From NCBI GenBank assembly GCA_002269645.1, contig NIVC01002844.1:1-64000 (forward strand): a stretch of DNA of 64,000 nucleotides, given 5' to 3'. The notes beneath the pieces were generated by a model. It searched no databases. It was given only the letters and a program-made list of their open reading frames with translations, and was not told the DNA's origin. A program made the translations under genes and the position numbers. Source of the DNA: Macrostomum lignano (lineage: Eukaryota). Every line of letters begins with the position of its first letter. The first letter of the stretch is position 1. Positions 4,272 through 34,626 of this stretch are shown here, piece by piece.

Positions 4272-5030
4272 TTAGCCGAATGGGGACTGGCACTCGCACA
4301 GACCTTCGCTATTGCTTGGCGACATGTCGGACAGCCGTTCCCTTCCGTTATAAGCAGCGAGCAAGCCTTGTCCTCCGGAGTCGTCATTGGGCTCGCCATC
4401 GCTCCAGAGGTTGCTGCTGACGGTGTTGACGGTGTTGTTGTTGCAGCCGACCCAGTACCAGCCGCCATCAGGCTCAGCGCTGCCGGGCGCCTGAAATCCT
4501 CCTAGCCACAGAGTGTTTCTGCTCCCATGGAGTGACCTCACGTGCTTTATGTGCTCCAATTCTTCCATGCTCATCACGTCCGCCATGATCACCAGACCGC
4601 TCTCCGACTCGCATGTCGATTTTATGTCATTCCACGAGCCGCTGACCACCTTGTACTTGACTCCGCAGAAGTCGTCTCCGTATCCGGACGGACACAGCCG
4701 TCCCGCCGGCAGTCCCGGCTGCTGCCTCACGAACACCCGGCCTCGTCTCGAGCAGCCGCAGTCCCTCACAGACTTGCTGCACTTGTTGAACTCGAACAGC
4801 TGGCACGGACCGTCGGACAGGCTGTAGGCCTGGCACTGCGGTCTCAGGCCACACAGGATGGCGCAGTGCTCCACCGATGTAACTCCAGTGATGTTGCGGA
4901 CGAAGTCGCTGTTGATGCACAGGGAGCCGTTGATGGGAGTGAATCTCAGGGAGCAGGCCTGGCTGCTCAGAGCAGAGCTCAGCAGTGATAAAAAGACGAA
5001 GCAAACCAGAAGGCTGCCAATTTCATACAT
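4272..5030 (-). CDS. Secreted PAN/Apple-like + C-type lectin protein, copy A (252 aa, intronless)
   Basis: Signal peptide; HCAILCGLRPQCQAYSLSDGPCQL (PAN-like Cys core); C-type lectin features LWLGG, WYW, EPND and terminal LCEC. Confidence 0.85.
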   Translation of the reverse strand: MYEIGSLLVCFVFLSLLSSALSSQACSLRFTPINGSLCINSDFVRNITGVTSVEHCAILCGLRPQCQAYSLSDGPCQLFEFNKCSKSVRDCGCSRRGRVFVRQQPGLPAGRLCPSGYGDDFCGVKYKVVSGSWNDIKSTCESESGLVIMADVMSMEELEHIKHVRSLHGSRNTLWLGGFQAPGSAEPDGGWYWVGCNNNTVNTVSSNLWSDGEPNDDSGGQGLLAAYNGRERLSDMSPSNSEGLCECQSPFG

Positions 5031-7510
5031 GCTTGTTGCCGTGCGGCTTGTTGCTAAGAGTAAATAGACTCACTTTCTTTATGTGCGATGGTGAGCTCAG
5101 GCAGGTGAGTTGCCGTTTTGCTATTGGATGAACCAGTACTGACTCTCTTTACTTGCTGACTCAATTTTTCGTGCGTTCCATACCTTTATGGCTGCTTGGG
5201 TACCATTTAGATTGCCGTCTTTGCTTTTATAGAACAACTTATAATGATAAATTATATGATAATAATATTAATTAAATTTAATATGATATAAATATAAATT
5301 ATAGTTCCATAAATAACGTTTCAGTGGGATATTTCTCGGAGGAAATCAACCCCTTTGCCCAGTGCCAGTGGTAATGCCTTCAATTGACGTCAACTTGATG
5401 CGGGGCACAGCCGTCAGGGACCTCAGGGACTCCAACTCCAACGCCAATGCCACGAAGGTCGAAAGCGCACGAAAATGCTCTTCTGATGCTCAGAACAAAA
5501 TCCCTGCTCGGCGATCCGAACTCCGAAATTAGGTGAACGACTGACAGTGTGAAAGAGCGCGGAGGACAGCAGAAGGACCTTCGTCCGGCCTAGCCAAGCC
5601 CGCTCAACTTAAACAAAGCATTTTTTCGCAGAAGCGTTGCGGCCGACATTATTAATGCAGAAAAAATATTCTGTAAAAATAACTTCAATATTCTTGTCAA
5701 ACAGTAGTCAAACTGACTACCCTACTCTAACAGTAGGAATACCAAGCCATGTTTCCTTCCGTCAAACTACCAAGCCCTGACAGTTTCTTTGCTGCGCCGG
5801 AACGGAGCAACGCAGGCACACGAAACTCAAGAACACGGGCTAACTTTTTGTTGCGCACCTTCTCAAACAAGAATCAAGTCGCCAGCCCTCCGGACCGTCG
5901 AGATATTCGACGATTCTGCCAGAAGGTCGGATTGGATTTTTCCCATAAGCGCCAGTGTATTCAGTACACCCCTGTGCGCCAATCAGCACTGCGCCTCAGT
6001 GCAGCCTTGCCAAGCCTCCAAATTTCAACAGCACGTCGATCACATGTGTCTGCATCAGCTGTGACTTCGTTGGTCACTAGCCTTCACCCAGGCGGAGCTT
6101 CTGGACCTTCAACAGGTGGCACCAGGGGACTATGGAGACCCTGATGCGAATTTCTCTAGTTTCGCCGATCAAGCCTCGACAGTGGGCAAGCCTCAACTGC
6201 TGGACGTGCATTCACTGTACACACGGCACCGATTATTTCTATTATCAGTAAGCAGTATCGTTCATGGAGAACAGCGAGATTTTTCCTTGCACAGCGTGTG
6301 ACTGCAGCATCAAAAGCAGCAATTTTTGGACATACAGTTTTCTCCTCCTGCATCTTTCCGTCTTCTCAGGGGATGATAAAGCTTACCTGTCCATTTTAAA
6401 GAGCTTTCTAGTTGATCATTTATCATTCGCAATGCAGTATGTGGTGTGTTCAATAAGAGAGGAACATTAAATGTCATTTAATCAATCGCAGATCGATCTC
6501 TGCGAGGCGGTCGTAGTGGCAGTGCGATTGCAAAAACTGCGTCCCCTACTTGGCAGGGATCAAGTAGTCTATATGGCAAAGGTTTTCATTTTTGCTCCCC
6601 CTCCCCAGGGCATTAAACTGGAGGCAGAGCAGCTCATTGGCTGTCTCTCCCGCTTCTCAATACCTGGGTTCGATTCCGTAAAGGCCACAGTGGTTCTTAA
6701 TACACAATTACACACTAAGTCACTAGCCGAATGCGTAGTGACTTATCATGAAAATATTGAAAACAGTTAAGAATTCTTCGTAACTACAAGCGTGAATCTG
6801 GCACTTCCGCGAAATAACTTTTTTCCAAAATGCTATCAATATTTAGAGAAGCAATGCTTTCCCTAAAAAATGAAATCAGGATCGATTTGGGTGGCGTCTA
6901 AATTCGCATCGGCGCGATGCATTGAAAGTTATGATGTGGAAATGGGAAAAATCTTCACTAGTTTGCTGGGTCTCCTAAGAATACCCGACTGCCTGCTGAC
7001 GAAGACTGGGGGTTGGTCTGGCCACACAGCATGCGCTGTGGACTGCCTGCGCCTGCAGGAAGCGGGCTTCCAACGTGTGCGGGGCTTGTCTTCCCGCTTT
7101 CTATGGATTTTTCTGGCTTCTGCTCAGTCCACGGCTTCCGCTATTCGGCTTCCTGCCACTGGGTAGATGACAGAAAGATACTCAGTCAAAGTTTTTCTGG
7201 TCTACAGTACGTTTGCATGCCTGATTTGTCTGTTGAATAGAATTACAGACTTCTTAGAAGCAACTTCGCATTGTGCGGCCATGCGTCCCCGATCTGCAGT
7301 AAAATGCAGTTTGCGCAACACCAGCGTAATACGGCCAATCGAATGCAGAAGGGACAACGCGTGAAGAGGGCTGGGCTAGGCTGACCAGCCAAGAGAATAC
7401 TGCTTCAGGAAAAATTAGAAAAGTTGTTTCAGATCAAAATAGTTACATAAGAATTAACAGGGCGGTTGTACTTTGTATTGAAGTTGAAAAATGTAGCTTT
7501 TTCAGGCCAT

Positions 7511-7937
7511 GACCTACACGCATTCAATTTAGTCCAAGATATGTTTGTAAAAGTAGTGGAGCTTTTGTCTATGGTAGCAAGGGTGACACAGCAGCATTTA
7601 TTTTGGTCTCACAGGCATCAATTTGATTCATAGCGACTATGAAACCCAATCATGAGTTACAGGCTCATGACTGTGTATTTAGATAATTCCTTTTAGATGA
7701 GTAAATTTCACTGTACCAATACAAGGTGACGTCAAAAATGTAGTCTGCTCAATTATAACAAAAATAAAAAGAGCATTTTAGCATGGTCAAAAATCTACTT
7801 CGTTCACAAGCCCATGGCGTTCGTTAGAGCAAATTCTGGACCCAAGCGAATGCTTCTTGGACAAAATTAAATGCTGCTGTGCCACCTCTGCTTTACTTTG
7901 ACAACATATCTTGGATTAAATTAAATGCGTGTAGGTC
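7511..7937. mobile_element. Putative non-autonomous DNA element (MITE) with ~45-bp imperfect terminal inverted repeats
   Basis: gacctacacgcattcaatttagtccaagatatg at 7511 is the near reverse complement of catatcttggattaaattaaatgcgtgtaggtc ending 7937. Both ends are flanked by CAT (possible 3-bp TSD). Confidence 0.5.
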
Positions 7938-8820
7938 CATTAGTGCCGCTGCCAAATGACATGTCGGAATACTTGTCCCTTCCTGGGTAGGCAGCAATCA
8001 AGAAGTGCCCGTCTAGACTATTGCTTGGCTCGCCGTCGGCCCACAAGCTGCTGTCCACGGTGTTGTTGCAGCCGACCCAGTGCCAGCCCAAGGACTACTA
8101 GACTAGAACTATAACATTCCAGTGGTCCTTGCGCCAGCCAGCTGACGCGCGCGTGGAAGCCTCCCAGCCACAATGAAGTTCCACCGTCTGCTATATCGGG
8201 TCAGCCATGCTCACCAGCAGGGGCGTCGCCATGGATTTTATGGTAGGTGGAACAAAGCCAAGAACTCAAAATGTACATGTACATGACTAAATTCCTCCTA
8301 AATTTCCATTATTTTAAGGATCGTGTTGTCAGCGCTCATTTTAGCACCGCAGGCACTCATTTTAGCGCCACAGGCACTCATTTTGGCACCGCAGGCACTC
8401 ATTTTGGCGCCGCAGACATTCCTTTTAGCTACACAGGCACTCATTTTAGCGCCACAGGCACTCATTTTGGCGCCGCAGGCACTCATTTTGGCGCCGCAGA
8501 CATTCCTTTTAGCTACACAGGCACTCGTTTGGCGCTGACGGCACTCATTTTGGCGCCAGAGGCACACATTTTGCCACAGGCAAAATTATTGATTACCACA
8601 ACTAGTCACAAGGTGGGGTGGGGGGACAAAGCATTGGCATGTCCCCCATAGCTTTTAATAGAAGGGACATGTCCCCCCTGTCCCCCTCGGGTGGCGACGC
8701 GCCTGATCACCAGACCGCTCTCCGACTCGCATGTCGACTTTACAGTGTCCCACGGGCCGCTGACCACCTTGTACTTGACTCCGCACAGGTCGTCTCCGTA
8801 TCCGGGAGGACACAGCAGTC
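7938..8820 (-). pseudogene. Disrupted PAN/C-type lectin copy (lectin-domain half only), most similar to copy E
   Basis: 7938-8110 closely matches 27657-27830 (e.g. acttgtcccttcctgggtaggcagcaatcaagaa). There is a ~50-bp insertion near 8090-8150 and a hAT element at 8218-8705. Lectin sequence resumes at 8706-8820 and is then truncated. Confidence 0.85.
8218..8705. mobile_element. hAT-type non-autonomous element (488 bp) with internal ~21-bp tandem repeats
   Basis: TIRs CAGGGGCGTCGCCA / TGGCGACGCGCCTG. 8-bp TSD ctcaccag (8210-8217) / atcaccag (8706-8713); intact paralogues have a single atcaccag here. An 8-bp TSD is characteristic of hAT. Confidence 0.85.
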
Positions 8821-9118
8821 TTGCCAGCATTGCTAAACAAAATTCAACATTTTGAAGAAAAAAAGCTGTCAAAAAACCCAACGCCTCGTGTAAGTCAGTC
8901 AATATTTTGTTTAGGAGTTTGCTTTGAGAGCATTTTTTCAGCGTCAAAAAGTACAAGAACCTTCCCGCAACTCGTATATTGTCTATCACCTCACTGACTA
9001 AAAAATCAGCAATACAGTGAAACTCCACGATGTCTTTTGCATTTGTACTTCTCGCACAGTTTTCAAGAAGCATCATCATCAGCATTATTGCTTGCAGTCG
9101 GTCGAATTCCTGTTCAGT

Positions 9119-9859
9119 TCAGCTGAATGGGGAGACGCACTCACACAGACCGCGACTGCCGCTGCCCACACTCATATCGGACAGTCCGTTTCTTCCCGTA
9201 TAGGCAGCGATCAAGAACTGATTCGAATCGTCGTTGCTGGGCTCGCCGCTGCCCCACAGGCTGGCGTCCACGGTGATGTTGCAGCCGACCCAGTACCAGC
9301 CGCCATCAGGCTCCGGGCTGCCGTCCGGCTGGAAGCCTCCCAGCCACAGATTGCTACCATCACGAAGCGACTCCACGTGGCTCATCTCTGAGCTGCTCGT
9401 CACGTCCGCCATGATCACCAGACCGCTCTCCGACTCGCATGTCGATTTTATGTCGTCCCACGAACCGTTGTACTCCTTGTACTTGACTCCACAGAAGTCG
9501 TCTCCGTATCCGGGCGGACACAGCAGTCCCGCCGGCAGTCCCGGCTGCTGCCTCACGAACACCCGGCCTCGTCTCGAGCAGCCGCAGTCCCTCACAGACT
9601 TGCTGCACTTGTTGAACTCGAACAGCTCGCACGGACCGTCGGACAGGCTGAAGGCCTGGCACTGCGGCCTGTCCCAGCACAGAATGGCGCACTGCAGCTC
9701 CGAATTAATGCCCAGGAATGTTTGAACAAAGTCGCTGCTGATGCACAGGGAGCCATTGATGGGAGTGAATCCCGGAGAGCAGGACTGGCTGCTCAGAGCA
9801 GAGCTCAGCAGTGAGGCAAAGATGAGCGCGATACAGATGTTTCCGGTAGAATGCTGCAT
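9119..9859 (-). CDS. Secreted PAN/Apple-like + C-type lectin protein, copy B (246 aa)
   Basis: Start placed at MQHSTGNICIALIFASLLSSALSS (ATG 9859) by alignment to paralogues. Same Cys pattern; EPSN motif. Confidence 0.85.
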   Translation of the reverse strand: MQHSTGNICIALIFASLLSSALSSQSCSPGFTPINGSLCISSDFVQTFLGINSELQCAILCWDRPQCQAFSLSDGPCELFEFNKCSKSVRDCGCSRRGRVFVRQQPGLPAGLLCPPGYGDDFCGVKYKEYNGSWDDIKSTCESESGLVIMADVTSSSEMSHVESLRDGSNLWLGGFQPDGSPEPDGGWYWVGCNITVDASLWGSGEPSNDDSNQFLIAAYTGRNGLSDMSVGSGSRGLCECVSPFS

Positions 9860-10565
9860 TCCAGTTGCCGTTTCGGATCTGGTAGTCATTTTCGCACTTA
9901 GACTTACCTGCTTTTTAAGCAGGGCGTTCATGTGATCCGTTTTTTGCCATTGGCTGCTGCCTATCTGCTGGCAGGGGAGGATTGTGAAAGTAGTGATAGG
10001 CAATGAGTTTTTTTGAGATCAGAAGTATTGCCAAGTTTTTCGTTTTTTTTCTTTCGTTTATCTGAATAAAATGTTTTTTTTACTTTAACGAACAATGACA
10101 GCTGTCTATCTCTTTTCTTCTTGAGGAAATTGATATTTGAGAACAGGTAAAGGGCCTTGCTGCATCATCCACCCATATGCCAGTTTGCTTTTAGTGCTTT
10201 TAGCGCTAATGCAGTGAGGAAATGACAATGTCTCGGTTTTACATAAAATATCTTGTAATCTTGTAACTTCGCTGAACTGCCATGACTTGCTGAGAAAACT
10301 GCTCTATAATTTCCTTAATTGTGCCAATCATTTCGTTCTCCGTTTAGTCGCATTTAAAAGGCTGATCCTCTACCTTCAGTAGCTTTACCGTCACATCATA
10401 GTAAGAACTTGCGTGGAACGCGAATCGGGTGAGACCGCGCAGCGACATTCCCAGCCTGGTTTCACGCTATAAAATGTATTCTGCTAGTAGTGCTGGATAA
10501 ACTTTACTCCAGCACAATGGCTTGTGTTTGGGTTCCAGGAAGCTTGGCTGCCTGTAATGAATAGG

Positions 10566-11626
10566 GTAGACTTGATCCAGGCATTCACAAACCCGATCTG
10601 CTGCCAGTCACTCAGTAGACTTGATCCAGGCATTCACAAACTCGATCTGCTGCCAGTTACTCAGTAGACTTGATCCAGGCATTCACAAACTCGATCTGCT
10701 GCCAGATACTCAGTAGACTTGATCCAGGCATTCACAAACTCGATCTGCTGCCAGTCACTCAGTAGACTTGATCCAGGCATTCACAAACTCGATCTGCTGC
10801 CAGTTACTCAGTAGACTTGATCCAGGCATTCACAAACCCGATCTGCTGCCAGTCACTCAGTAGACTTGATCCAGGCATTCACAAACCCGATCTGCTGCCA
10901 GTCACTCAGTAGACTTGATCCAGGCATTCACAAACTCGATCTGCTGCCAGTCACTCAGTAGACTTGATCCAGGCATTCACAAACCCGATCTGCTGCCAGA
11001 TACTCAGTAGACTTGATCCAGGCATTCACAAACTCGATCTGCTGCCAGTCACTCAGTAGACTTGATCCAGGCATTCACAAACTCGATCTGCTGCCAGTCA
11101 CTCAGTAGACTTGATCCAGGCATTCACAAACCCGATCTGCTGCCAGATACTCAGTAGACTTCATCCAGGCATTTACAAACCCGATCTGCTGCCAGTCACT
11201 CAGTAGACTTGATCCAGGCATTCACAAACCCGATCTGCTGCCAGTTACTCAGTAGACTTGATCCAGGCATTCACAAACCCGATCTGCTGCCAGTCACTCA
11301 GTAGACTTGATCCAGGCATTCACAAACCCGATCTGCTGCCAGTCACTCAGTAGACTTGATCCAGGCATTTACAAACCCGATCTGCTGCCAGATACTCAGT
11401 AGACTTGATCCAGGCATTCACAAACTCGATCTGCTGCCAGTCATTTAATAGACTTGATCCAGGCATTCACAAACTCGATCTGCTGCCAGTCACTCAGTAG
11501 ACTTGATCCAGGCATTCACAAACTCGATCTGCTGCCAGTCATTTAATAGACTTGATCCAGGCATTCACAAACCCGATCTGCTGCCAGTCACTCAGTAGAC
11601 TTGATCCAGGCATTCACAAACCCGAT
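10566..11626. repeat. 49-bp minisatellite (~21.5 copies)
   Basis: Unit gtagacttgatccaggcattcacaaac(c/t)cgatctgctgccagtcactca, head-to-tail with no unique spacers. Confidence 0.97.
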
Positions 11627-12088
11627 TTTAAAATGGATTTGGGCTATCTCTAGACCAGGGAGTAACTGGCGGTAGTGTAAACCGGCCGTTAGTCTCGTCT
11701 TTTGACTCATTTTTATCATTTTTTACTTCTACTTAGGTATTTCCCTGTCTTCACTTCCAAAAAGCAAGTACAGCGATATACCATGCAAATATTTATTAGC
11801 ATTGCTAAACAAACAATTTAAAGTAAGAGAAAGCTGTCAAAAAGACACAACGCCACCTGCACATCAGCCAAGACTTCATTTAGAAGTTTGCCTCGAGAGT
11901 ATTTTGCAGCGTCAAAAGGTACGAGGACCCTCCCACAACCCGTATATTGTCTACCACCTCACTGACAACAAAATCAGCAATACATTGAAAAATTGCATGT
12001 TGTCTTGCGCAATGGTACTTCTTGCACAGTTTTCAAGAAGCATCATCATCAGCATTATTGCTTGCAGTCGGTCGAATTCCTGTTCAGT

Positions 12089-12829
12089 TCAGCTGAATGG
12101 GGAGACGCACTCACACAGACCGCGACTGCCGCTGCCCACACTCATATCGGACAGTCCGTTTCTTCCCGTATAGGCAGCGATCAAGAACTGATTCGAATCG
12201 TCGTTGCTGGGCTCGCCGCTGCCCCACAGGCTGGCGTCCACGGTGATGTTGCAGCCGACCCAGTACCAGCCACCATCAGGCTCCGGGCTGCCGTCCGGCT
12301 GGAAGCCTCCCAGCCACAAATTGTTACCACGACGAAGCGACTCCACGTGGCTCATCTCTGAGCTGCTCGTCACGTCTGCCATGATCACCAGACCGCTCTC
12401 CGACTCGCATGTCGATTTTATGTCGGTCCACGAGCCGCTGACCACCTTGTACTTGACTCCGCAGAAGTCGTCTCCGTATCCGGACGGACACAGCAGTCCC
12501 GCCGGCAGTCCCGGCTGCTGCCTCACGAACACCCAGCCTCGTCTCGAGCAGCCGCAGTCCCTCACAGACTTGCTGCACTTGTTGAACTCGAACAGCTGGC
12601 ACGGACCGTCGGACAGGCTGAAGGCCTGGCACTGCGACCTCAGGCCACACAGCATGGAGCAGTGCTCCACCGATGTAACTCCAGTGATGTTGCGGACGAA
12701 GTCGCTGTTGATGCACAGGGAGCCGTTGATGGGAGTGAAGCTCAGGGAGCAGGCCTGGCTGCTCAGAGCAGAGCTCAGCAGTGAGGCGAAGACGAAAGGA
12801 ACGAGAAGGTTTCTGCCAACTCACTGCAT
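12089..12829 (-). pseudogene. PAN/C-type lectin copy C, full-length but TGA at codon 3 (pseudogene, null allele or sequence error)
   Basis: ATG CAG TGA GTT GGC... at 12829-12821. The rest is an uninterrupted 244-codon paralogue (VGRNLLVPFVFASLLSSALSSQACSLSFTP...CECVSPFS). Confidence 0.75.
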
Positions 12830-13209
12830 GGCTGTTGGCGGTTTCGAGATTGCGTGAGTTCGACTCACTCTCTTTTAAAGCAAGGGACTCGCGTGATCCA
12901 GTTTTTGCTATTGGCCGCCGCTTGCGTTTTGACAGATTTGTTGGTTCACAGAATGGCAAAAAGTCTGTTTTTGCTGTAGTCAGGAAGGCATTGTTCTAGT
13001 GTAGGAAGGAACAATAGCAGCTTCTTTTCGCTGGGCTTTTTGATTGCATCCATACTACATGTGAACAGGTTCAGGGATTTGCAGGGACACGATTTTGTCG
13101 GAAGGGGGAATACTCCTAGCAGGAGCAGTAGGATATCGAAATACGTACAATAGATGCTGGCATGTAAGTCAGTTGATTTTTTCTGGGACATGCCTCAAAT
13201 GATAAACAC

Positions 13210-13515: not shown

Positions 13516-16500
13516 TAAGTCTACTTTCGCTCTGTAATCTTGGAAGAGATCGGGACAGATAGCTGCAGAGGTATATTACAGCTGGACTCGGCCCACATGA
13601 AAGCAAGAAGCCAGTTTGTCAATAAGTCAAGCAGGATTCCTCACAGAAATTGTCTCGCGGGGTAATAATCGCAAAAAACTTCGTGCACAGCCCCGATATC
13701 AGGATCCCGAGTCCTTGCACATGATGGAAAGGGGAATTATCTGTGCAGCATGAGGCTATTATGGTCTCTTTCCCAGCCAGCAATGCTCACACCTGCCTTT
13801 TCGGTGGGATGATTTCTCAACAGGCTTCGTCTCCTGCTTTTTCACATTGCAAGGTGCTGTGGCTAAAAAGTCTCCTAAGTCTTGTTGAGCAGACTCATTG
13901 GCGCCGAGGTCCTGGTGCCACGACAAACTCACTCGCTAAGACCCCAGTGTAACTCGGTGCTGATGGACGTTTGGTGAGGGAGTATTCTCAAGGGTTCTTG
14001 GACTCCCCCGCAAAGGTGATTTTTTCTCTTGGGGACCTGCTGCTTGGTTTCGGGTAGCGGCCTTGCCGCTCCTTTCCTGTGCTTTGCAGAAAGTCCCACC
14101 TTTTACTTCCAGCCAATGGCTTCTAGCCGAAGTCATCTACCGGCTGTAGATGTCCGGGCCGTGGACTCTGCGGCCAACCATCTGGTACCATCGAGGCCTG
14201 GGGCGAGACCCGTGTAGCAATTTTCTGAATGGTGCCTCTGACAAGACATCTACCACTTCAAATGCCAAAAGACAACTGAGCATGGCAGCTGCCGCTCGTA
14301 AAAAGCACGTCGAAGCGACGTCGAAACTATTTTCGTCTTGTCTATCGACATTGAATTTTCGACGTCGACTTTTCGTCCTTGTATGAAGTCATTCGACATC
14401 GAATTCTCGACATGCAACGTCGGCTCCCCGACATGTTTCCAATAACAATTGACGTCACTTTTTCGACGAATTTTTGCGTAGTCATTTTTGTGGCATTCTT
14501 TTGACATAAAAATCAAGAAAATGGCGCTCCTTTTCTTCCAGTTAAAATCTTCCAGCTGGGCGCGAGAAAAATGAGGGAAAAAAGGCGATAAAATCTTCCC
14601 TCGCGGCAGGGCCGACTGGAGACGGACCCGCCTGCTCCAAGGCATTGGGCATTGAGCCGGTGAGCGAAGGGCAGCAAATTCCGCCCACTGCCTTCCGACT
14701 GGTCAGAGGCCTTCTGCTGAGCAGGAGCCCATGGAAACCGGAGAACCCGACCCTCAGCTGGTGAGCGCTGAGTAGGAGGAGGGACTCAAGGTAAAATTAA
14801 GTCAAATGATGCGCCACCTGGCTACCACTTGCTGCATATTTGGTGCAAAGGATTTTGAGAACTGATCTTTCCTCGGGGACATCCGTGTTGTCCAAATCAA
14901 TAATCTTCTCCCCAATAAATCCGCGCTGGCAGCATCAGCCTACTTCCCGGGCGACGCTCCAGTAGTCTGTGACGCGCTAGTCAACCCCATTGTCCTTCGT
15001 ATATGCTAATTATTGTGAAACTATAGCCATACTTATATTTATGATACGAGGTAGGTTCTTTTCCTTTTGATAAAGTAATATTTTTAACCAAAATTTTATC
15101 AGTAACGAGCTAAATTGTTTAAAGAACTAGCAATCTGTGCTCCTCAGTAAGGGAAAGGCCTAAAATTTCAATAAACTACGAGTAGGTTCTGACTTTGTGC
15201 AGTCACTATTGTTAATCTCTTAAGGAAAATGATGTTTAAAACAAACAAGCATCTGTCCTGAAATCATGCAGATATCAGATCTCCTGAGCAATCCCCATCA
15301 GCCACAGCAGTTCAGCAATTCTCCCAATGAAACTTGACATTTCATAATCTCTCTGAGCCAAAGAAATTCAGCAATTCATCCCCTGTGAGCCTTGACATCT
15401 TAGCGTGACTATTTTTATCCATGAACTTGAGTTTAGTTCAGAACTTTTGGGACATCTATTGGCAACTTTTAGACTTTTAGAAATATGTTCTATGGTTGTC
15501 CATATCTGTCCGTTGATTAGTTAGTACTGTACTGGAGGCCTGCCGTTCCTACATGAGATAATAGGCCAAAAAATCGATACGCGCTTGGCGGGTCAGCGAC
15601 AGCCGCTTCGCATTAAATAAACGCCACCCAAGCCGTGGGCACGTGACCTAGGCCCGGCCCATCAGCCCCCACCCGCACCAACGCACAAGATCCACGCTCC
15701 ACTGGTTTAGCACCCAACCAAGCTACGCCCGGCCGGACCAAACAACAGACATATTCAACGCTGCATATAAGCCTTGCAGAACCGAACCTGGGAAGTTTGC
15801 CAGACGCGGCAGCTACCGCTCCACTAATCACCCCAGTAGCGAGGATTTGATGGTGCAGTCGCATTGGAAAACTATGCGAGTTAGAAGAGCGGGCAGAGCC
15901 CAGAATTTAGACTGGAGCCGGGAATAAAGCAAAAGAGAGCCGTTCGCATCTAATGATGGCAGGTGAGCCGGCGAGAGGGAGGAAAGCGCAGAGCAGAGCT
16001 GCCTTCGTTGCTGCACTGGAGTAGCAAATTTGATGATGGAGTAGCAAAGCCTCCACTTGTGAGCTGGCATACGAAGCTGTTGGCTGGCAAACTGCCGCAA
16101 GTGCATCAGTAATTTATAATACAGAAACTTGAGAATGCATGGCACAAGAGCCAATTTTAACAAAGGATTTGCGAGGCAGAACGACACACCACAATCCGCT
16201 ATGCACCACCCGCGTTCATTCCGAGACTCCTGCGGATGGGAAAAAAGTTTTGAGTGGCCCCATAGGAAGGCTGTCCTCAACAGCTGAGAGATGCAGAAAT
16301 TTAGTTTGCTCCGTTGCTATGGCGGAAAGAAGGCAAGAAAAGCTAATTGGTGTGGTGTACAGGTGCTTTGAATCCGCTTACAGCAAGCAGCAAAGTTTCC
16401 TTGATAGCTAAATATTGACTATACTGTGTGTTAGCCAATGGCTCATGAAAAAATTCATACTTTCGCTGACAAAATGATTTCCAAGGACATATTAAAAAGC

Positions 16501-16691: not shown

Positions 16692-17429
16692 TCAGCTGAA
16701 TGGGGAGACGCACTCACACAGACCGCGACTGCCGCTGCCCACACTCATATCGGACAGTCCGTCTCTTCCCGTATAGGCAGCGATCAAGAACTGCTTCGAA
16801 TCGTGGTTACTTGGCTCGCCACTGCCCCACAGGCTGGCGCCCACAGTGTTGTTGCAGCCGACCCAGTACCAGCCGCCATCAGGCTCCGGGCTGCCGTCCG
16901 GCTGGAAGCCTCCGAGCCACAAATTGTTACCACGACGAAGCGACTCCACGTGGCTCATCTCTGAGCTGCTCGTCACGTCCGCCATGATCACCAGACCGCT
17001 CTCCGACTCGCATGTCGATTTTATGTCGTCCCACGAGCCGCTGACCTCCTTGTACTTGACTCCGCACAGCTCGTCTCCGTATCCGGACGGACACAGCAGT
17101 CCCGCCGGCAGTCCCGGCTGCTGCCTCACGAACACCCAGCCTCGTCTCGAGCAGCCGCAGTCCCTCACAGACTTGCTGCACTTGTTGAACTCGAACAGCT
17201 GGCACGGACCGTCGGACAGGCTGAAGGCCTGGCACTGCGGCCTGTCCCAGCACAGAATGGCGCACTGCAGCTCCGAATTAATGCCCAGGTATGTTTGAAC
17301 AAAGTCGCTGTTGATGCACAGGGAGCCGTTGATGGGAGTGAATCTCGGAGAGCAGGACTGGCTACTTAGAGCAGAGCTCAGCAGTGAGGCAAAGACGAAG
17401 GCAGTTTTGAGGCACTCAAGATGATGCAT
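16692..17429 (-). CDS. Secreted PAN/Apple-like + C-type lectin protein, copy D (245 aa)
   Basis: Intact ORF with signal peptide MHHLECLKTAFVFASLLSSALSS; same architecture; EPSN motif. Confidence 0.87.
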   Translation of the reverse strand: MHHLECLKTAFVFASLLSSALSSQSCSPRFTPINGSLCINSDFVQTYLGINSELQCAILCWDRPQCQAFSLSDGPCQLFEFNKCSKSVRDCGCSRRGWVFVRQQPGLPAGLLCPSGYGDELCGVKYKEVSGSWDDIKSTCESESGLVIMADVTSSSEMSHVESLRRGNNLWLGGFQPDGSPEPDGGWYWVGCNNTVGASLWGSGEPSNHDSKQFLIAAYTGRDGLSDMSVGSGSRGLCECVSPFS

Positions 17430-18240
17430 GGCTGTTGCAGCTGCCTGGCTTAGCTGCGCATTCGCTTTTTGTTCAGGTAATACAGCTTCTTCCTGTTGCC
17501 ATTGGTAGTCGCCGTGTCCAATAGTTGCTTGCCGAGATAGCGAAGGTAAAGTTCTGTGAAGGCAAAATGCTTCAATTGTTTAGGGAAAAGTTTTTTCTTC
17601 CAGGATCCGACGTCGCTATGCTTTTTACTTGACGAGCATTACAAATACGAGTGTAATGCCATAAGTCGCATAATTCAATGTTAAAATTATTTTTGTGCTA
17701 ACTTCTCACAAAAAGGCCACATGTCTTCTGAAATCTTCTGCCGTTTTCAATCATTTAAAAGTAAATAGTTTTTGCCTTCGTGTTGGTCTATCCAATGTTG
17801 GTATCTACTACCGTTCTCGACATTTTTGTGCTTACGGACAAAGTTTTTTTAGTGGTGAAATATGCAGTATTCTGGTTTTAGTATTCTGTTCTGTTATCCA
17901 TTCTGTTACTATGGTCTTCGATTGATCGATAATGGAGCAAAAGTAACTTTAGGGCGTGCAGCAGCAGAAAGCAATAGGACATTTCAGGCGAAGGGAAATG
18001 CAGTCAACTCTGCACAGACACAGAGCTGTGCACTTAATTGCTTGCGTCTTCATTTGGCAGCAGATCCAGGTCCTCCTCTTTTTCATCTTCGCCTCTTCGC
18101 CCTCGTCCGCTGTGAGCCAGCCTTCCTCCTCCTCTAGTATCCGGATCAAACTGCACTTGAGCCGTAGCCACGACAAACACTGTTCGACACAGTGTTAATT
18201 ACAGTGTAACAGTATAAAGTGTAAAACAGTGCTGCGCACT

Positions 18241-20005: not shown

Positions 20006-20685
20006 CTGTTTTCGCTGTGGCTTGGACTCTCAGAGATATTTCAGGAGTCAAATAAAGGATAAGTTGGTTGCTGTTTAAATTTACAGTCATTTGACTTTTG
20101 GTTTATAATATCTTAGCTCTCCTGAATTAGGCAAAAACAGCGCTTTTAAGGTTTTGTGACCAGTTGAAGTCTTACTATTCCATTCGTCAAAATTAATGGA
20201 TCTTGTCGGATAGAAAAAAATGAGAACTAATGAGAGTTTTATAATTAGCTCATTTTTTTAATCAAGCTTCTCAAGCTGGGAGAAAGTAAAGCCACGACTG
20301 AGACGAAGATAATAGGATCCAAGCTGATCAAGAGAAGGAATGGGACTGAGAGGAATACCTAACCTCGTATTAATGCCAAAAGTGAATTCCACTTTTCATT
20401 TGGAAAAGCAGAGGACACTTAAAGCAGTCCGACAGTCTGGCTGCTTTTAGCTTTTTAGGCAACTAAAGAGCAAGCTTCTTTAGAAAATAGTTCTGAATAA
20501 TGGAAAAAATTAAAGGGTTTAAAACAAGGTACCATCAAAGCAGGGTGTGACGATATTAGATGTACATTATTTCACAACTGGCAAGTGCATTACTCAAAGT
20601 GTATTTAAACTCACTTCGAACAGACAGCTTCATCTTTACAGCTCAGCTGCTTTTAAATAGTAATGTCCATTGCAAAGGAAAGATA

Positions 20686-23600: not shown

Positions 23601-25695
23601 CTTCCCTTGCGTACCACAACTTCTATGCCTGCTATAAGTATGAGCAAGTTTCAGCCTTCTACCATCTACATGTACTTACGTTGTAGTCCACTACAAGTAC
23701 GAGTATTACACACGCTTCAGTGTTATTTCGCTTGTACCCGTAATCGATGTTAAAACCTCGTAGTCCTCATCGTCGTGCATCCTCCATTGTAACGATACAA
23801 TATGGTACAATCTTGGTACAATATGGGTTGTCAGATTCAGTGCATTCGTGTTTTTTATTCTTGCAGTACTGTCGACCATCAGAAAAGAGTGCGAAGCTCA
23901 AAGAGGCCGACAACTGGAACAGTTGCCAAACAACAGCCCGGTCTTGGAGCGAATCATCGGCAGATTGATTGAATCATTCAAGACTCTTGTCGGAGACACT
24001 ACTCAGGCCACGCAGAGTTATGTGCATGAAGAGCTCGTCAAAATAGTCAGGAATAACCTGCAGAAGAAACCTCTGCTGAGGGGTCTGCAACAGCTGGAAG
24101 AAATTCTAACTGATGGTTGTAAAAATCAAATGGATAAGCTTAAGGAAAAAGCGCACCGGAAAGTGCTGGAAATTCTAGACATGCAGAAAGTCATCTTCCT
24201 CAACAACCCAAAGATAGATGATCTGTTCAGGTATGTGTTTACATTAAATTTTTACACTTCTTTCATCCTTAATATCTTTATTTGAGTTCATTAATCATTT
24301 TCAGGGCGAGCTGCCTATTTTGATTAATATTTCATAAATTGGGTTCAAATAGCAAAGTTGAAAATTTAAGCGAAGGTTTCACTGTATAATGTACGAGCGT
24401 CGATTAGGTTTATGCTTTCTAGGTACGCTCGTATACGGATTCAAGTGTTTTTATTCTTGAGTCAGACTGGTGCCGAGCAAATCAAATTGTGTTTGTGAAA
24501 CTGGATGGGAAGTTATAATGTAATCCTACATGTATGCTTAGACATAATGAAATTTAAGCTTTGAAAAAAATCCGTTCAAACCACTGGGACCAATACGCCT
24601 CCGTATCCTGCTATATAAACCTAATTAGCACCTGTTTAAACCCAAAAGAAGACACAAGAGCAGCAGCATTAGCACGAAAGGGGATGCGCGGAAGCAACCC
24701 CATAAAAGCAGCAGCTCAAATTAAAAGTTTGTTTGGCATCACGAATGCAAACAGCGATGCAAGAAAATTGGAAAAATACGCGTCGTAAAACTTGAAAGAA
24801 AAACATTTTTTGAGCTCACGCAGGCAGCGAAAAAACGCAGAGTCAACTGAGCGAGACGCCAATAAAAGGGGCGACGGCGCAGAGGCTAAAGCCCATGCCA
24901 CCAGGCCACTACCCCACGCACGCAGAGCCAAGAACACCCCCCCCCCCACATAGCAAAGCGAGAGAGAACGTACGCAAAGCGACACGCAAGACAGGGCAGA
25001 AGAGAGGGATTTGAAACTGGTTATTGTCATTGACTAGTCAAGACCAGTCACAAACCAACATATTGTATTTCAACAATTTATCTATTTAATTAGCTGGTAT
25101 TTTGTTCCGCAATCACTACCAACTTGAATTTTCCAGCAAAATGGCTCACGAGAAAGACGAGCAAGCTGCTGAACATGCTCCTGAAAAAAAAGCAAAATCT
25201 TTGCTGCAAATCATTGAAGACTGCGCCAAAGACTGGCTTGAAACAAGTGATTCAGCTGGTTCAGGCGCAGTTCAGGCTGCTCTGGTTGGGATCATGTCGA
25301 AATTAGGGCTCCACCCGCCGATATCGCAACTGCTTGTCATCGCCGCGTTGAATTTCTTGCCTTGGTGGTTCTCACAGCCGGAATCAAAGGATCAAAGCTT
25401 CGACCACAAGGACGATGAGCACCGGCTGGTGTGCCTCACCTACGTGTACATAGAATTGGTCTGCGATCGAACGGCCGACGCGGTGCCGATGGCCATCATT
25501 CACTTCTTTAATAAAAGGCTGGCGGCGGACGTCTGCAAGCTCATTCCGCATCCTAAGTGGGAAGATTTAAAGAACCTTAGCACCTGTGCCCAGCAACAGC
25601 AGAAGATAGAATCTGCTTCTGACAGCCTGAGGCGTTGGAAGGACATTGTCGCACAGTTGTGCAGCCCAACATCTGATGAGACGTCAGCAGTTTAA
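20686..25695 (+). CDS. Mx-like dynamin-superfamily GTPase, 7 exons, ~710 aa
   Basis: Exons 20686-20760, 20901-21169, 21400-21576, 21720-22176, 22279-22510, 23867-24230, 25137-25695. All introns are GT-AG with consistent phases (2133 nt total). Motifs: G1 VVVVGDQSDGKS, LPKGTGICTRCP, G3 DLPG, G4-position TNCD, stalk QRGRQL (cf. Mx YRGREL), GED-like YIELVCDRTADAVPMAIIHFF. Confidence 0.88.
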
Positions 25696-26072
25696 ATCGT
25701 GGTATTTCGTCGGTATTGATTTCTATATTAGTTTGTGGCGCTAGGGTGTTAATGTTAAAGACAATTTTTTTTCAAATAGTTTAAACATCCTATTAAAATT
25801 TCATTCATGTCATTAAAACTTTGAACGTTTTGTGAAGTTTTTACCAGCAAAGCATCGCAAAGTTCACTGAGGCTATCATTATAGTTTCGTCAATGGTATT
25901 CACTTAGCTATATTGAAACGAAGCAATGATATCCTCGATCGGGTATCAGTTAACTTTAGTTCTAATTTTAGGACTAAATCACCCTTCAAACTTCATACGA
26001 TCGGAGACTTAAAGTGTCTTCAGGCTTCGATGATATGAAATTTCAATGGTTTTCGAGTACTATGCTTTAGAT

Positions 26073-26240: not shown

Positions 26241-26251
26241 CTTTAGATAAT

Positions 26252-27625: not shown

Positions 27626-28372
27626 TCAGTTGAACGGCGACTGGCACTCGCAAAGTCCATGAGTGCCGCTGCCCAGAGACATGTCGGACAACTTGTCCCT
27701 TCCTGGGTAGGCAGCAATCAAGAACTGCCCGTCAAGACCATTATTTGGCTCGCCCTCGGCCCACAGGCTGCTGTCCACAGTGTTGTTGCAGCCGACCCAG
27801 TGCCAGCCGCCTGCCGGCTCCGCGCTGCCGGGAACCTGGAAGCCTCCCAGCCACAATGAAGTTCCATCCGTTCGAAGCGACCGCACCGAGTTTACGTGCG
27901 CCATCTCTGCTATGCTTGTCACGTCCGCCATGATCACCAGACCGCTCTCCGACTCGCATGTCGATTTTATGACGTCCCACGAGCCGCTGACCACCTTGTA
28001 CTTGACTCCACACAGGTCGTCTCCGTATCCGGGCGGACACAGCAGTCCCGCCGGCAGTCCCGGCTGCTGCCTCACGAACACCCGGCCTCGTCTCGAGCAG
28101 CCGCAGTCCCTCACAGACTTGCTGCACTTGTTGAACTCGAACAGCTGGCACGGACCGTCGGACAGGCTGAAGGCCTGGCACTGCGGCCTCAGGCCACACA
28201 GGATGGCGCAGTGCTGCTCCGAAGTCACGCTTGGGAATTTTCGCACAAAGTCGCTGTTGATGCAGAGGGAGCCGTCAGTAGGAGAGAATCGAGTTTTGCA
28301 GAGCTCACTGCTGACTGACAAAGTTGCACAGGCAGAGACGATGCTCAACGTAAGGCTGTAGGCGACCTGCAT
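27626..28372 (-). CDS. Secreted PAN/Apple-like + C-type lectin protein, copy E (248 aa)
   Basis: Intact ORF with a divergent signal peptide, the shared core and an EPNN motif. Confidence 0.87.
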   Translation of the reverse strand: MQVAYSLTLSIVSACATLSVSSELCKTRFSPTDGSLCINSDFVRKFPSVTSEQHCAILCGLRPQCQAFSLSDGPCQLFEFNKCSKSVRDCGCSRRGRVFVRQQPGLPAGLLCPPGYGDDLCGVKYKVVSGSWDVIKSTCESESGLVIMADVTSIAEMAHVNSVRSLRTDGTSLWLGGFQVPGSAEPAGGWHWVGCNNTVDSSLWAEGEPNNGLDGQFLIAAYPGRDKLSDMSLGSGTHGLCECQSPFN

Positions 28373-28908: not shown

Positions 28909-29050
28909 GATGAATCATGTTTCTATTTATAATAAAAAGATGAATCATGTTGCTATTTATAATAAAAAGATGAATCATGTTGCTATTTATAATAAAAAGA
29001 TGAATCATGTTGCTATTTATAATAAAAAGATGAATCATGTTGCTATTTAT
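28909..29050. repeat. 30-bp AT-rich tandem repeat (~4.7 copies)
   Basis: Unit atgaatcatgttgctatttataataaaaag. Confidence 0.92.
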
Positions 29051-30844: not shown

Positions 30845-31930
30845 AAAAAGAAGCGTCATGTAAAAATCATAGAAGCGTCATTTACAAAATCATAGAAGCA
30901 TCATTTAAAAAATCATAGAAGCGTCATGTAAAAAATCATAGAAGCGTCATGTAGACAATCATAGAAGCGTCATTTAAAAAATCATAGAAGCGTCATATAA
31001 AAATCATAGATGCGTCATTTAAAAAATCGTAGAAGCGTCATGTAAACAATCATAGAAGCGTCATGTAAAAAATCATAGAAGCGTCATGTAAACAATCATA
31101 GAAGCGTCATTTAAAAAATCATAGAAGCGTCATGTAAACAATCATAGAAGCGTCATGTAAAAAATCATAGAAGCGTCATGTAAACAATCATAGAAGCGTC
31201 ATTTAAAAAATCATAGAAGCGTCATGTAAACAATCATAGAAGCGTCATGTAAACAATCATAGAAGCGTCATGTAAAAAATCGTAGAAGCGTCATGTAAAA
31301 AATCTTAGAAGCGTCATTTAAAAAATCATAGAAGCGTCATATAAAAATCATAGATGCGTCATTTAAAAAATCGTAGAAGCGTCATATAAAAATCATAGAT
31401 GCGTCATTTAAAAAATCGTAGAAGCGTCATGTAAACAATCATAGAAGCGTCATGTAAAAAATCGTAGAAGCGTCATGTAAAAAATCTTAGAAGCGTCATG
31501 TAAACAATCATAGAAGCGTCATGTAAACAATCATAGAAGCGTCATGTAAACAATCATAGAAGCGTCATGTAAACAATCATAGAAGCGTCATTTAAACAAT
31601 CATAGAAGCGTCATTAAAAAATAATAGAAGCGTCATTTAAAAAATCATAAAAGAGTCATGTAAACAATCATAGAAGCGTCATGTAAACAATCATAGAAGC
31701 GTCATTTAAAAAATCATAGAAGCGTCATATAAAAATCATAGATGCGTCATTTAAAAAATCATAGAAGCGTCATTAAAAAATCATAAAAGCGTCATTTAAA
31801 AATCATAGAAGCGTCATATAAAAATCGTAGAAGCGTCATGTAAAAATCATAGAAGCGTCAAGAAAAAATCATAGAAGCCTCATTTAAAAACTAATGAAAG
31901 TGTCATTTAAAAAATTAAGAAGCGTCACGG
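30845..31930. repeat. 23-bp AT-rich minisatellite (~45 copies)
   Basis: Unit gcgtcatgtaaacaatcatagaa and variants. Confidence 0.95.
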
Positions 31931-32748: not shown

Positions 32749-32810
32749 TTAGGGTTAGGTTAGGGTTAGGGTTAGGGTTAGGGTTAGGGTTAGGCTAGGG
32801 TTAGGGTTAG
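32749..32810 (+). repeat. Interstitial telomeric repeat (TTAGGG)n, ~10 units
   Basis: ttagggttaggttagggttagggttagggttagggttagggttaggctagggttagggttag. Confidence 0.9.
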
Positions 32811-33894
32811 AAGGTTGACAGATATTTTTAGATTTCCAAGGCTTATTGGGGGCATTGCTGAGATGTCAAGGGGGGAAGTTGATATGTTAAAGCTTGTGGG
32901 GGGGGATAACTGACATGTCAAGGCTTACAAGGTTTGACAGAAGATTTTTTAAGATTTCAAGGATACATGTAGCTTATTAAAAAAACGTGTATTGCATTTC
33001 TTTGGCTCCCCAACGGGGGGCGTAGATTGCTAGTTTTATCACTAATTTTCTTTGTCGTAAAGTACCAAATACAGTACCAAAAAAGTCCTGCAAATGACGG
33101 AAAGACCAAGTCAAGCTTTTGGAGCATAATGGACGTTATGAGGCAAATACTTGGTATCGAATACAGCCACGAAAATTTGAGTAAGGAAAACTGGTAGAAA
33201 ATGAGCGTCAGAAAAGCTAGTCAGAACATCTGTAACATACACAGTCTAAGAGTAACTGGGTAGTGTTGCCATGACAACAAGAACCAGAAGCCCGATATAT
33301 TGGATAGGTTGCAGAAGCCGAGACCCAACTGTGAAGCGACTGCTTCACTAGCTAAATAGAATGAAATGCTTGATAAAGAGAAAGTGGTAATTTCCATTAT
33401 ACGAGCTAAAACAGTTATAATGGAAAATAATTGTTATACTTTTAATATACAAGAAACCAGATAACTTGTAAACATTGAATACCGGCCTTGCTTACTGATC
33501 ATTTTTGTCTGTTTTCTTGTTTTTTTTTAATGAAAACGGTTGGCAACCATTTGTAAAAAATAACCCGCTCTGGGACACGGGATTCTAGATGCAAATCTGC
33601 TAGGTAGGAGAGATGCTCAAGAGTAGCCCAAGCGTCAAGCGTACCAGCGCTCATATGCTGTGCGCTGAAAAGCAACAAAATTAAATAATGCAAAAGCAAG
33701 CCTGACTCCATGCAAGCATTTCCAGTGCAAAACAAAATCGGAATAAACTGGTAGCCTTCTCTACGTTTAATTACTCTGACTTCACATAATTTAAACATAA
33801 ATTCACATAAAGCTCGCTTGATTGAGAGTCAGCGAGTTGCTGGCCACTGATCCAATGACTAAAAATCGTAATCCGAAATCTAAATTTCTCCTGC

Positions 33895-34626
33895 TCAGTG
33901 AAACGGCGACAGGCACTCGCAGAGACCGTATTTGGCGAACGAATAGTCAGTGAGTCCGCTCTTTTTGGTATAGACAGCGAGCAAGTTCTGCCCATCACCG
34001 CCATCGTTTGGCTCACCACCGGCCCAAAGGCTCGGGTCCAAAGGGATGTTGCAGCCGACCCAGTACCAGCCGCCATCAGGCTCCGCGCTGCCGGCCGTCT
34101 GGAAGCCTCCCAGCCACAGATCGTTACTAGGACGAAGCGACTCCACGTGGCTCATCTCTGAGCTGCTCGTCACATCCGCCATGATCACCAGACCGCTCTC
34201 CGACTCGCATGTCGATTTTATGACGCCCCACGAGCCGCTGACCACCTTGTACTTGACTCCACAGAAGTCGTCTCCGTATCCGGGCGGACACAGCAGTCCC
34301 GCCGGCAGTCCCGGTTGCTGCCTCACGAACACCCGGCCTCGTCTCGAGCAGCCGCAGTCCCTCACAGACTTGCTGCACTTGTTGAACTCGAACAGCTGGC
34401 ACGGACCGTCGGACAGGCTGAAGGCCTGGCACTGCGGCCTCAGGCCACACAGGAAGGAGCAGTGCTCCACCGATGTAACTCCAATGACATTGTGGACGAA
34501 TTCGCTATTGATACACAGGGAGCCGTTGATGGGAGTGAATCTCAGGGAGCAGGTCTGGCTGCTCAGAGCAGAGCTCAGCAGTGAGGCAAAGACGAAGGCA
34601 GTCTTGAGGCACTCAAGATGATGCAT
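33895..34626 (-). CDS. Secreted PAN/Apple-like + C-type lectin protein, copy F (243 aa)
   Basis: Start placed at MHHLECLK (ATG 34626), the same leader as copy D. EPND motif; distinct C-terminal loop sequence. Confidence 0.87.
   Translation of the reverse strand: MHHLECLKTAFVFASLLSSALSSQTCSLRFTPINGSLCINSEFVHNVIGVTSVEHCSFLCGLRPQCQAFSLSDGPCQLFEFNKCSKSVRDCGCSRRGRVFVRQQPGLPAGLLCPPGYGDDFCGVKYKVVSGSWGVIKSTCESESGLVIMADVTSSSEMSHVESLRPSNDLWLGGFQTAGSAEPDGGWYWVGCNIPLDPSLWAGGEPNDGGDGQNLLAVYTKKSGLTDYSFAKYGLCECLSPFH

Follow-up and report, generated by a model that had tools for sequence, protein, structure and literature searches.

A tandem array of putatively secreted PAN/Apple–C-type lectin genes in Macrostomum lignano, probably homogenised by duplication and gene conversion

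Introduction

PAN/Apple and C-type lectin folds typically bind carbohydrate or protein, and tandemly expanded lectin families similar to the one described here include the clec clusters of C. elegans and the FREPs of snails. Lineage-specific tandem multigene families of secreted lectins are also represented by the C-type lectin (CTL) expansions of bivalves (PMC10140915) and by the Rlecs of prawns (PMC7536079). The subject of this report is a group of seven gene copies on contig NIVC01002844.1 of Macrostomum lignano (assembly GCA_002269645.1), of which positions 1 to 64 000 were analysed (the window). [quoted passage not shown] The array is a lineage-specific PAN–CTLD variant of a type of expansion, the tandem lectin array, that is very common in invertebrates.

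The scenario that we propose can be put as follows: (i) the array would consist of small genes, each with its coding sequence (CDS) in a single exon and with a compact promoter of its own; (ii) the product would be a secreted protein of about 24 kDa, in which a signal peptide precedes one PAN/Apple domain with additional disulfides, and a Pro/Gly linker of nine residues leads on to one long-form CTLD; (iii) once duplicated, the copies would repeatedly have undergone gene conversion or unequal exchange among themselves, keeping nearly identical a central 130–270 nt that reaches from the second half of the PAN domain across the domain junction into the beginning of the CTLD, while the first PAN half and the ligand-loop half of the CTLD would stay 25–45% divergent and be reassorted between copies; (iv) the proteins would bind glycans via the primary site of the CTLD (EPN or EPS, the latter as in the galactose-binding lectin TC14), the PAN domain providing a second carbohydrate- or protein-binding surface or a means of oligomerisation; and (v) the copies would prefer different ligands because their CTLD loops differ (EPN versus EPS, and indels in the loops).

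Results

Organisation of the array

Five intact and two broken copies were located between 4272 and 34626, all on the minus strand, by a listing of open reading frames (ORFs) and by tblastn with copy D (Table 1); the same tblastn search found no further copy elsewhere in the 64-kb window. The original prediction, made from the letters of the window, had described seven co-oriented and intronless copies. All seven are indeed present, and the coding sequence of each intact copy is a single uninterrupted ORF; the start numbers given at that time are the low-coordinate ends, i.e. the stop-codon ends, of the copies. In A, B, D, E and F the frame begins with an ATG, codes for a hydrophobic N-terminus and stays open as far as the stop codon, and the longer ORFs that extend to 10003 (copy B) and 34821 (copy F) are read-through of the 5' leader. 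A signal peptide had been announced for every full-length copy; one is found in these five but not in copy C, which has a stop at codon 3. The array copies are 70–89% identical at the protein level, and the CDSs of B, C and D are 93–95.5% identical (BLASTN). Fifteen cysteines follow the signal peptide and are conserved in all copies; their odd number hints at a free cysteine and at oligomerisation.

The close similarity of B, C and D, in a species that is a hidden polyploid, brings up an assembly artefact in which haplotypes or homeologues of one locus have been stacked in tandem, a risk that the original prediction had itself named. We hold this to be extremely improbable. When each copy was compared by BLASTN together with 2.5-kb flanks, homology between copies began near codon 10 and ended some 10 nt beyond the stop codon, even for the pair B–D (95.5% identical), and the flanks directly outside the CDS are unrelated, so the copies are not haplotype duplicates. 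Moreover, satellites of different kinds, repeat fragments and a dynamin-family gene lie between the copies, and at their ends A, E and F are 25–45% divergent from the other copies.

Table 1. Coordinates of the array copies, their parts and associated features in the window
Feature	Position	Strand	Remarks
Copy A	4272..5030	-	intact single-exon CDS, 252 aa; signal peptide, PAN/Apple, CTLD; EPN...LSD
GTRAGTC heptamer, A	5071-5077	-	
CCAATAGCA box	5119..5127	-	97 nt upstream of A ATG
Pseudogene 3' piece	7935..8187	-	E-like CTLD C-terminal fragment, 91% identical to E 27655-27808, frameshifted
Minisatellite, 21/84-bp	8335..8573	.	within insertion splitting pseudogene
Pseudogene 5' piece	8615..8833	-	CTLD start, 'LLCPPGYGDDLCGVKYK...GLVI'; PAN half missing
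Copy B	9119..9859	-	intact CDS, 246 aa; EPS...LSD
GTRAGTC heptamer, B	9901-9907	-	
CCAATGGCA box	9945..9953	-	upstream of B (-94); TTAAAAAG at -59, GTAAGTC at -48
Copy C	12089..12829	-	ATG 12827-12829, TGA 12821-12823 (codon 3); otherwise open frame
GTRAGTC heptamer, C	12862-12868	-	
CCAATAGCA box	12906..12914	-	upstream of C; TTAAAAG and GTGAGTC downstream of box
Copy D	16692..17429	-	intact CDS, 245 aa; EPS...LSD
Copy D CTLD	16695-17096	-	residues 112-245
Copy D Pro/Gly linker		-	residues 103-111
Copy D PAN/Apple	17124-17354	-	residues about 26-102
Copy D signal peptide	17361-17429	-	residues 1-23
132-nt near-invariant core, D	17106..17237	-	encodes 'QCQAFSLSDGPCQLFEFNKCSKSVRDCGCSRRGRVFVRQQPGLP'; nucleotide diversity 0-0.02
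Core equivalents	A 4707-4838, B 9533-9664, C 12503-12634, E 28052-28183, F 34303-34434	-	
CCAATGGCA box	17497..17505	-	upstream of D (-76)
Copy E	27626..28372	-	intact CDS, 248 aa; EPN...LSD; ends most divergent of array
Copy F	33895..34626	-	intact CDS, 243 aa; EPN...LTD
CCAATGGCA box	34705..34713	-	upstream of F (-87); TATAAAG at -54
Satellite arrays	10566-11626 (B-C), 30849-31927 (E-F), 48828-50430, 51380-52271, 53276-53900, others		

The N-terminal module

Pfam scores of the N-terminal module for the PAN families all remain below the gathering threshold (13.9 versus 21.1 bits for PAN_3, 13.2 versus 27 for PAN_4 and 10.6 versus 21.4 for PAN_1). A profile of the module (residues about 24–112) matched 3 of the 177,635 PDB sequences, all three being apicomplexan PAN/Apple lectins: Eimeria MIC5 (E = 2.5e-4), Toxoplasma MIC4 (E = 0.01) and, far from significance, Sarcocystis SML-2 (E = 5.1). 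When the profile was run against 1.84 billion representative sequences, the matches outside the family were multi-PAN proteins (E = 1e-13 to 1e-4); those examined score E = 1e-13 to 1e-74 for Pfam PAN_1, with the exception of two weaker cases (P0021, PAN_2, 1.7e-4; P0024, PAN_1, 7.8e-6). Cysteines C56, C60, C66, C76 and C91/93 are invariant across the family and align to cysteines of MIC5 and MIC4. In the AlphaFold model, residues 30–102 form the succession strand-strand-helix-strand-strand-strand, with a predicted local distance difference test score (pLDDT) of 84–94 over residues 31–80.

A divergent PAN/Apple domain is supported by these profile and cysteine comparisons. The original prediction had made the same assignment; the profile matches to apple proteins are in line with it, and the module behaves as such a domain in them. 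The cysteine motif that had been given for it was right in its overall pattern but one residue short in its last long interval, the spacing being x6 and not x5 (C-x3-C-x5-C-x-A-[FY]-x6-C-x-L). A separate 'Cys linker' module, also part of the earlier description, has to be given up: since the MIC4 alignment extends through 'RDCGCSRRGRV' and the model has a strand at 96–102, this segment appears to be the C-terminal part of the apple domain, with its last conserved cysteine and its last strand.

The C-terminal module

With Pfam Lectin_C (PF00059) the best score was 19.8 bits (copy A) versus a gathering threshold of 22.6, and no Lectin_C match at E <= 1 was obtained for E or F in Pfam. A CTLD profile gave 23 PDB matches at E < 0.01, all of which are CTLDs (best E = 2.6e-5); they include selectins, codakine, mosquito GCTLs, mincle, TC14 and CEL-I. 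The AlphaFold2 model reached a pLDDT of 84.2 and a predicted template modelling score (pTM) of 0.74 with an alignment of 20 sequences, in which the relatives P0016 and P0017 and nine bacterial or metagenomic CTLD matches were added to 9 sequences; with the 9-sequence alignment, pLDDT was only 39. The model shows the signal-peptide helix, the N-domain and the CTLD in this order. Foldseek returned 356 PDB matches at E <= 1e-3, and the best 50 of the 356 are all C-type lectin or C-type lectin-like, nearly all of them carbohydrate-recognition domains. Single-domain targets had a template modelling (TM) score, relative to the target, of about 0.65–0.80 and a root-mean-square deviation (rmsd) of 2.3–4.1 Å, mostly <3 Å; for the top matches (SIGN-R1, CEL-I, langerin, CD23 and codakine) the target TM score was 0.72–0.80 and the rmsd about 2.4–3 Å. 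[quoted passage not shown] The long-form cysteine pair (C113/C122) is present in the array copies, as are C1 (C140) and C4 (C238/C240).

A near-invariant core in mosaic copies

Divergence is very unevenly distributed along the CDS. Nucleotide diversity amounts to 0.25–0.5 at the 5' end, falls to 0–0.02 over codons 66–110, remains <0.1 up to codon 150 and rises to 0.25–0.35 in the loop half of the CTLD; the wider low-diversity tract in D spans 16992–17252. Likewise, the synonymous substitution rate (dS) is 0.05–0.11 in the core, 0.15–2.0 in the N part and 0.03–1.2 in the C part, and the ends of the copies diverge by 25–45%. Ancestry also changes along the copies. Copy C is chimeric, with an A-like 5' half and a 3' half that is B-like together with about 300 bp of 3' flank; copy D is equal to F from -11 to codon 22 and B-like from there; copy F is A/C-like in codons 41–60, E-like in the core (1.5% different) and B/C/D-like in codons 157–174. 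Run-length permutation tests gave p <= 2e-4 for seven pairs, a test of the pairwise homoplasy index (PHI) type gave p = 0.0005, and the four-gamete test was failed by 50% of informative site pairs. The PAN N-half comes in three cassette types (A/C/F, B/D, E) and the CTLD loop in four (A; B/C/D; E; F), N-type 1 being joined to three different loop types. The confinement of homology to the CDS and the mosaic make-up of the copies are new here and point to gene conversion.

The best reading of the core, as far as the sequences allow one, combines strong protein-level constraint on the domain junction with ongoing gene conversion among functional copies. The junction itself ('CSKSVRDCGCSRRGR') is nearly invariant, with 1–2 substitutions, even in relatives that are ~45% identical. 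Instead of gene conversion, selection at the nucleotide level (acting, for instance, on a target of small RNAs, on a second frame overlapping the first, or on an element for splicing or regulation) could be what keeps the core identical: its boundaries are common to all six copies, other frames are open through it on both strands, and the pseudogene, which is free of constraint and excluded from the set of functional copies, is ~9% diverged from E there. We give this alternative little credence. The pseudogene is diverged to the same extent in its 3' part, so that the core has no intrinsically low mutation rate; overlapping ORFs arise in GC-rich DNA (GC content at third codon positions, GC3, 0.8), where stop codons are rare; and in the distant homologue L001 the codon differs at 39% of the conserved core residues, which argues against any deep nucleotide constraint. 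Mosaic ancestry and the four-gamete failures, for their part, show exchange. RNA structure or a known RNA family was rejected as the cause, no excess of structure (z = +0.44 and -0.28) and no match to an Rfam family being detected in the core. GC3 is 0.80–0.84 in the core versus 0.64–0.79 elsewhere, a difference that is compatible with biased gene conversion and not diagnostic of it.

A more far-reaching idea is that the invariant core is maintained as a recombination platform that reassorts PAN N-half and CTLD ligand-loop cassettes and thereby gives combinatorial germline diversity of recognition; reassortment might then conceivably take place between individuals or somatically. We rate such a platform as improbable.

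Upstream elements

The sequence CCAATRGCA occurs exactly five times in the whole window, both strands counted, where 1.3 occurrences are expected by chance; in every case the ATG of an array copy (A, B, C, D or F) follows 76–97 nt downstream. No such box was found upstream of copy E. Its confinement to the region upstream of five copies is another new observation. A TATA-like element (TTAAAAG/TATAAAG) is found at about -55 in B, C and F, and a GTRAGTC heptamer at about -45 in A, B and C. Together, the three elements look like a compact promoter shared by the copies, copy E excepted. GTRAGTC resembles the 5' splice-donor consensus, and in A it is followed by a pyrimidine tract and AG; it might be related to a leader intron or to trans-splicing.

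Selection and broken copies

Pairwise ratios of nonsynonymous to synonymous substitution rates (dN/dS, Nei–Gojobori) are 0.36–0.70 overall and 0.1–0.9 in every sub-region, the six sequences, which have undergone recombination, being too few for site models. By the same pairwise method no positive selection was seen in the CTLD loops or the PAN N-half. These values indicate purifying selection, with some relaxation towards the ends and nothing that would suggest diversifying selection, and the 'diversified recognition' of the original prediction finds no selection signature in any region.

The beginning of copy C reads ATG-CAG-TGA. With this stop codon, the copy is left without a usable start and signal peptide, and it is probably a young pseudogene. 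The pseudogene that had been noted at 7938 does exist, in the form of two E-like pieces, frameshifted, split by an insertion and without the PAN half. It is truncated at 8833, which is the end of a ~300-bp 3' flank common to B and C (8826–9121 matches 11798–12091); given this coincidence, the B/C duplication probably destroyed the E-like pseudogene.

With two of seven copies broken, with array copies absent from the public M. lignano protein sets searched, and with intronless genes whose homology is confined to the CDS, it could be argued that the array is largely non-functional, i.e. composed of silent duplicates or retro-copies in decay, whose intact look would be due only to youth or homogenisation. 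This appears quite unlikely to us, since dN/dS is well below 1 in every region, old diverged ends included, all 15 cysteines are conserved and the CCAATRGCA motif occurs only upstream of the copies. Furthermore, neither poly(A) tracts nor target-site duplications were found, and the copies are co-oriented and clustered, unlike dispersed retro-copies.

Relatives of the array proteins

Among 5.8 billion clustered proteins, searched with a single sequence and with the family profile, no protein more than 74% identical to any array copy was found; the closest is P0001 (74%, to E). Exact look-ups of D and P0001 in public assemblies gave no match. All named relatives are M. lignano entries, in agreement with the lineage-specific family that had been predicted; further relatives (P0004/L001 and P0016) come from Logan read assemblies. 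In UniProt the entries bear the automatic names 'C-type lectin domain-containing protein' or 'Apple domain-containing protein', and since relatives are already named by domain in this way, the domain content in itself is no discovery. A search of the literature on PAN plus CTLD architectures, Macrostomum lectins and seminal-fluid lectins yielded no paper on the array family. The original prediction, which did not recognise a named family here, would have been refuted by an already well-described one; none was found in this literature. Two candidates were discarded: the M. lignano adhesion proteins ap1/ap2, which possess a CTLD but are giant, multidomain and unrelated, and a literature candidate whose supplementary transcripts encode another protein, of CTLD-plus-Ig type.

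The relatives comprise short secreted proteins (UniProt A0A1I8HTM9, which is P0001, A0A1I8J208, A0A1I8H311 and A0A1I8GDI5), a membrane-anchored protein with a transmembrane (TM) segment and the order TM-TSP1x3-PAN-CTLD (PAA49823/PAA50463, i.e. P0046/P0017, P0046 having the canonical EPN...LND), a CUB-...-PAN-CTLD protein (A0A1I8IYN7, P0031) and P0012, a protein of 3072 aa and four modules that carries the PAN-to-CTLD cassette. These M. lignano cassette proteins share with the array the PAN domain, the same junction and an 'LCPxGYG..CGVKYK' CTLD cassette ending in 'CECxSPF'; the core of P0001 is identical to that of the array at the protein level, and in the TSP1 relative at locus L002 the cassette also occupies one exon and the gene is also in tandem repeat. 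They differ in that the array copies are only 43–74% identical to any of them and, as a subfamily, have lost the C2–C3 cysteines and carry Q/S substitutions in the Ca2+ site, whereas some cassette relatives keep QPD or EPN...LND. No study on any M. lignano cassette protein was found, all annotations being automatic.

At L002 (M. lignano NIVC01003630.1) the TSP1-PAN-CTLD relative lies in tandem duplicate at 2408–3111 and 13661–14667. Some of the copies there change frame within the CTLD, which results in products of 377 aa (P0017) versus 486 aa (P0046); the frame change could represent either real frameshifts or assembly indels.

Other features of the window

Between D and E, on the opposite strand, lies a multi-exon gene for a dynamin-family GTPase (20560–25700, plus strand, e.g. 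21643–22206), with Dynamin_N and Dynamin_M above threshold. The first exon of a secreted trypsin-like serine protease (36320–36865, plus strand; Pfam Trypsin, E = 1e-22) is situated directly beyond copy F. A 396-aa ORF (37972–39162, plus strand) matches the 'Trematode PH-like domain' weakly and below threshold (PF25356, E = 3e-4). A C-terminal Bicaudal-D exon is found at 55540–56745 (plus strand); over its ORF 55900–56745 it shows 100% identity with a pair of M. lignano entries in UniProt, of which one bears the name 'Kazrin', and the ORF upstream of this exon runs into a 21-bp satellite (55182–55473). This identity establishes M. lignano as the species, for which the repeats common to the window and the M. 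lignano contigs L002–L004 had been too weak. At the other end of the window, the ORF 172–690 (plus strand) codes for a hydrophobic N-terminus and then for an acidic 'TPANQEDDESADKT' unit, whose 42-bp repeat occurs in eight exact copies, and may specify a secreted acidic repeat protein.

Two ORFs, 18692–19747 (minus strand) and 44243–45307 (plus strand), are by eye candidate fragments of non-LTR (long terminal repeat) retrotransposon reverse transcriptase or RNase H; neither has a Pfam hit at E <= 0.01. Long minisatellite and satellite arrays are unusually abundant in the window (periods of 19–55 bp, up to 85 copies), and several of them create long spurious ORFs.

Discussion

The proposal that these proteins bind glycans depends on the primary Ca2+/sugar site of the CTLD. 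At this site the tripeptide EPN is found in A, E and F as well as in several relatives; B, C and D have EPS, and P0013, P0014 and P0025 have QPD; the EPN cited by the original prediction as a hallmark is consequently correct for A, E and F but not for B, C and D. The 'WND' position reads L-[S/T/N]-D across the family. A switch between EPN and QPD is the classical signature of mannose-type versus galactose-type binding. The best single-sequence PDB match, TC14, aligns with the EPS...Q...LDD layout, and this tunicate lectin is a proven galactose binder. On these grounds, glycan binding by the array CTLDs is plausible.

Several points weigh against our reading of the array as one of glycan-binding lectins shaped by gene conversion. 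The canonical C2–C3 disulfide is absent from the array copies, and another residue stands at 2 of the 5 canonical Ca2+/sugar ligand positions (Q for E after EPN/EPS, S/T for N in 'WND'); with these ligand substitutions and the lost disulfide, classical Ca2+-dependent sugar binding is not assured. Pfam gathering thresholds are missed for both domains. Foldseek was run on the whole model, and its output is dominated by CTLDs. Gene conversion is deduced from one genome, the NCBI and UniProt M. lignano protein sets that were searched apparently lack the array copies, and no dN/dS above 1 was found in any region tested.

The changes in the CTLD would also fit a different use of the fold, namely protein binding or structure in the style of snake-venom snaclecs, antifreeze CTLDs or matrix and eggshell proteins, with the PAN domain as the main binding module. 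The two ligand substitutions occur in all array copies; the cysteines lost from the array are kept in relatives (P0014 has C2/C3, 'YAC...NDC', and P0016 also has cysteines at those positions); snaclecs and a struthiocalcin figure among the profile and fold matches; and the Pfam Lectin_C scores are sub-threshold. We nevertheless regard a non-lectin role of the CTLD as unlikely, because the family switches between EPN, EPS and QPD exactly like sugar-binding CTLDs, a proven galactose binder has the same layout as B, C and D, and the top Foldseek matches are carbohydrate-recognition domains. As to the missing disulfide, C192 and the second cysteine of 'CEC' may replace C2–C3.

If the array products are glycan-binding lectins, a role in immune recognition, in gut or mucus secretion or in reproduction could be imagined; for the last, the Drosophila seminal lectin Acp29AB offers a comparison (cited in PMC6953679). 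The array adds a previously uncharacterised PAN/Apple–CTLD combination to the catalogue of invertebrate lectins. Partial concerted evolution is moreover displayed here in a small natural example, in which a homogenised core, divergent and reassorting ends and an excluded pseudogene that can serve as a neutral yardstick are found side by side. Should the copies bind different glycans, they would provide a handle on the innate recognition or secretion biology of flatworms, of which, to our knowledge, very little is known. Transgenesis and RNA interference are available in M. lignano, so that function is directly testable.

How does the array compare with systems already described? The best CTLD sequence matches outside Macrostomum are bacterial proteins with a PEP-CTERM anchor, found in metagenomes (P0005, P0010 and others; hhalign probability 97.8%, 35% identity over 110 columns), a ranking that may be biased by the word-indexed search. 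They have in common with B, C and D an identical run, 'WLGGFQPDGSPEPDGGW' (D 16902–16952), and differ by the absence of a PAN domain and of the long-form N-terminal cysteine pair and by the presence of a bacterial sorting signal. The match could reflect a common CTLD subclass, ancient transfer or the bias of the word index.

Variable ligand-binding regions are a feature that the array shares with the tandem lectin families of invertebrates. For those of bivalves, prawns and others, expression and challenge data exist; for the array the analysis shows neither positive selection nor somatic diversification. In the expanded lectin families that we found, the PAN plus CTLD combination did not occur ('apple' is absent from PMC10140915).

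Soluble single-CTLD lectins, such as tunicate TC14 (1byf/1tlg), sea-cucumber CEL-I and bivalve codakine, resemble the array proteins in the fold and size of the CTLD and in being secreted, and TC14 does so in the EPS/EPN ... Q ... L-x-D layout as well; they are without a PAN domain, keep the C2–C3 disulfide and are about 20% identical. For the N-terminal module the counterparts are the micronemal lectins of Apicomplexa. The apple domains of MIC4 and SML-2 bind galactose. These lectins have several apple domains in tandem, no CTLD and a role in parasite invasion; identity with the N-terminal module is low, and the SML-2 match is not significant. Eimeria tenella MIC5 (1hky), Toxoplasma MIC4 (4a5v) and Sarcocystis SML-2 (2yil) are nonetheless the sole solved structures matched by the profile of that module, with which they share the helix-Cys / C-x-A-F / C-x-L-F core.

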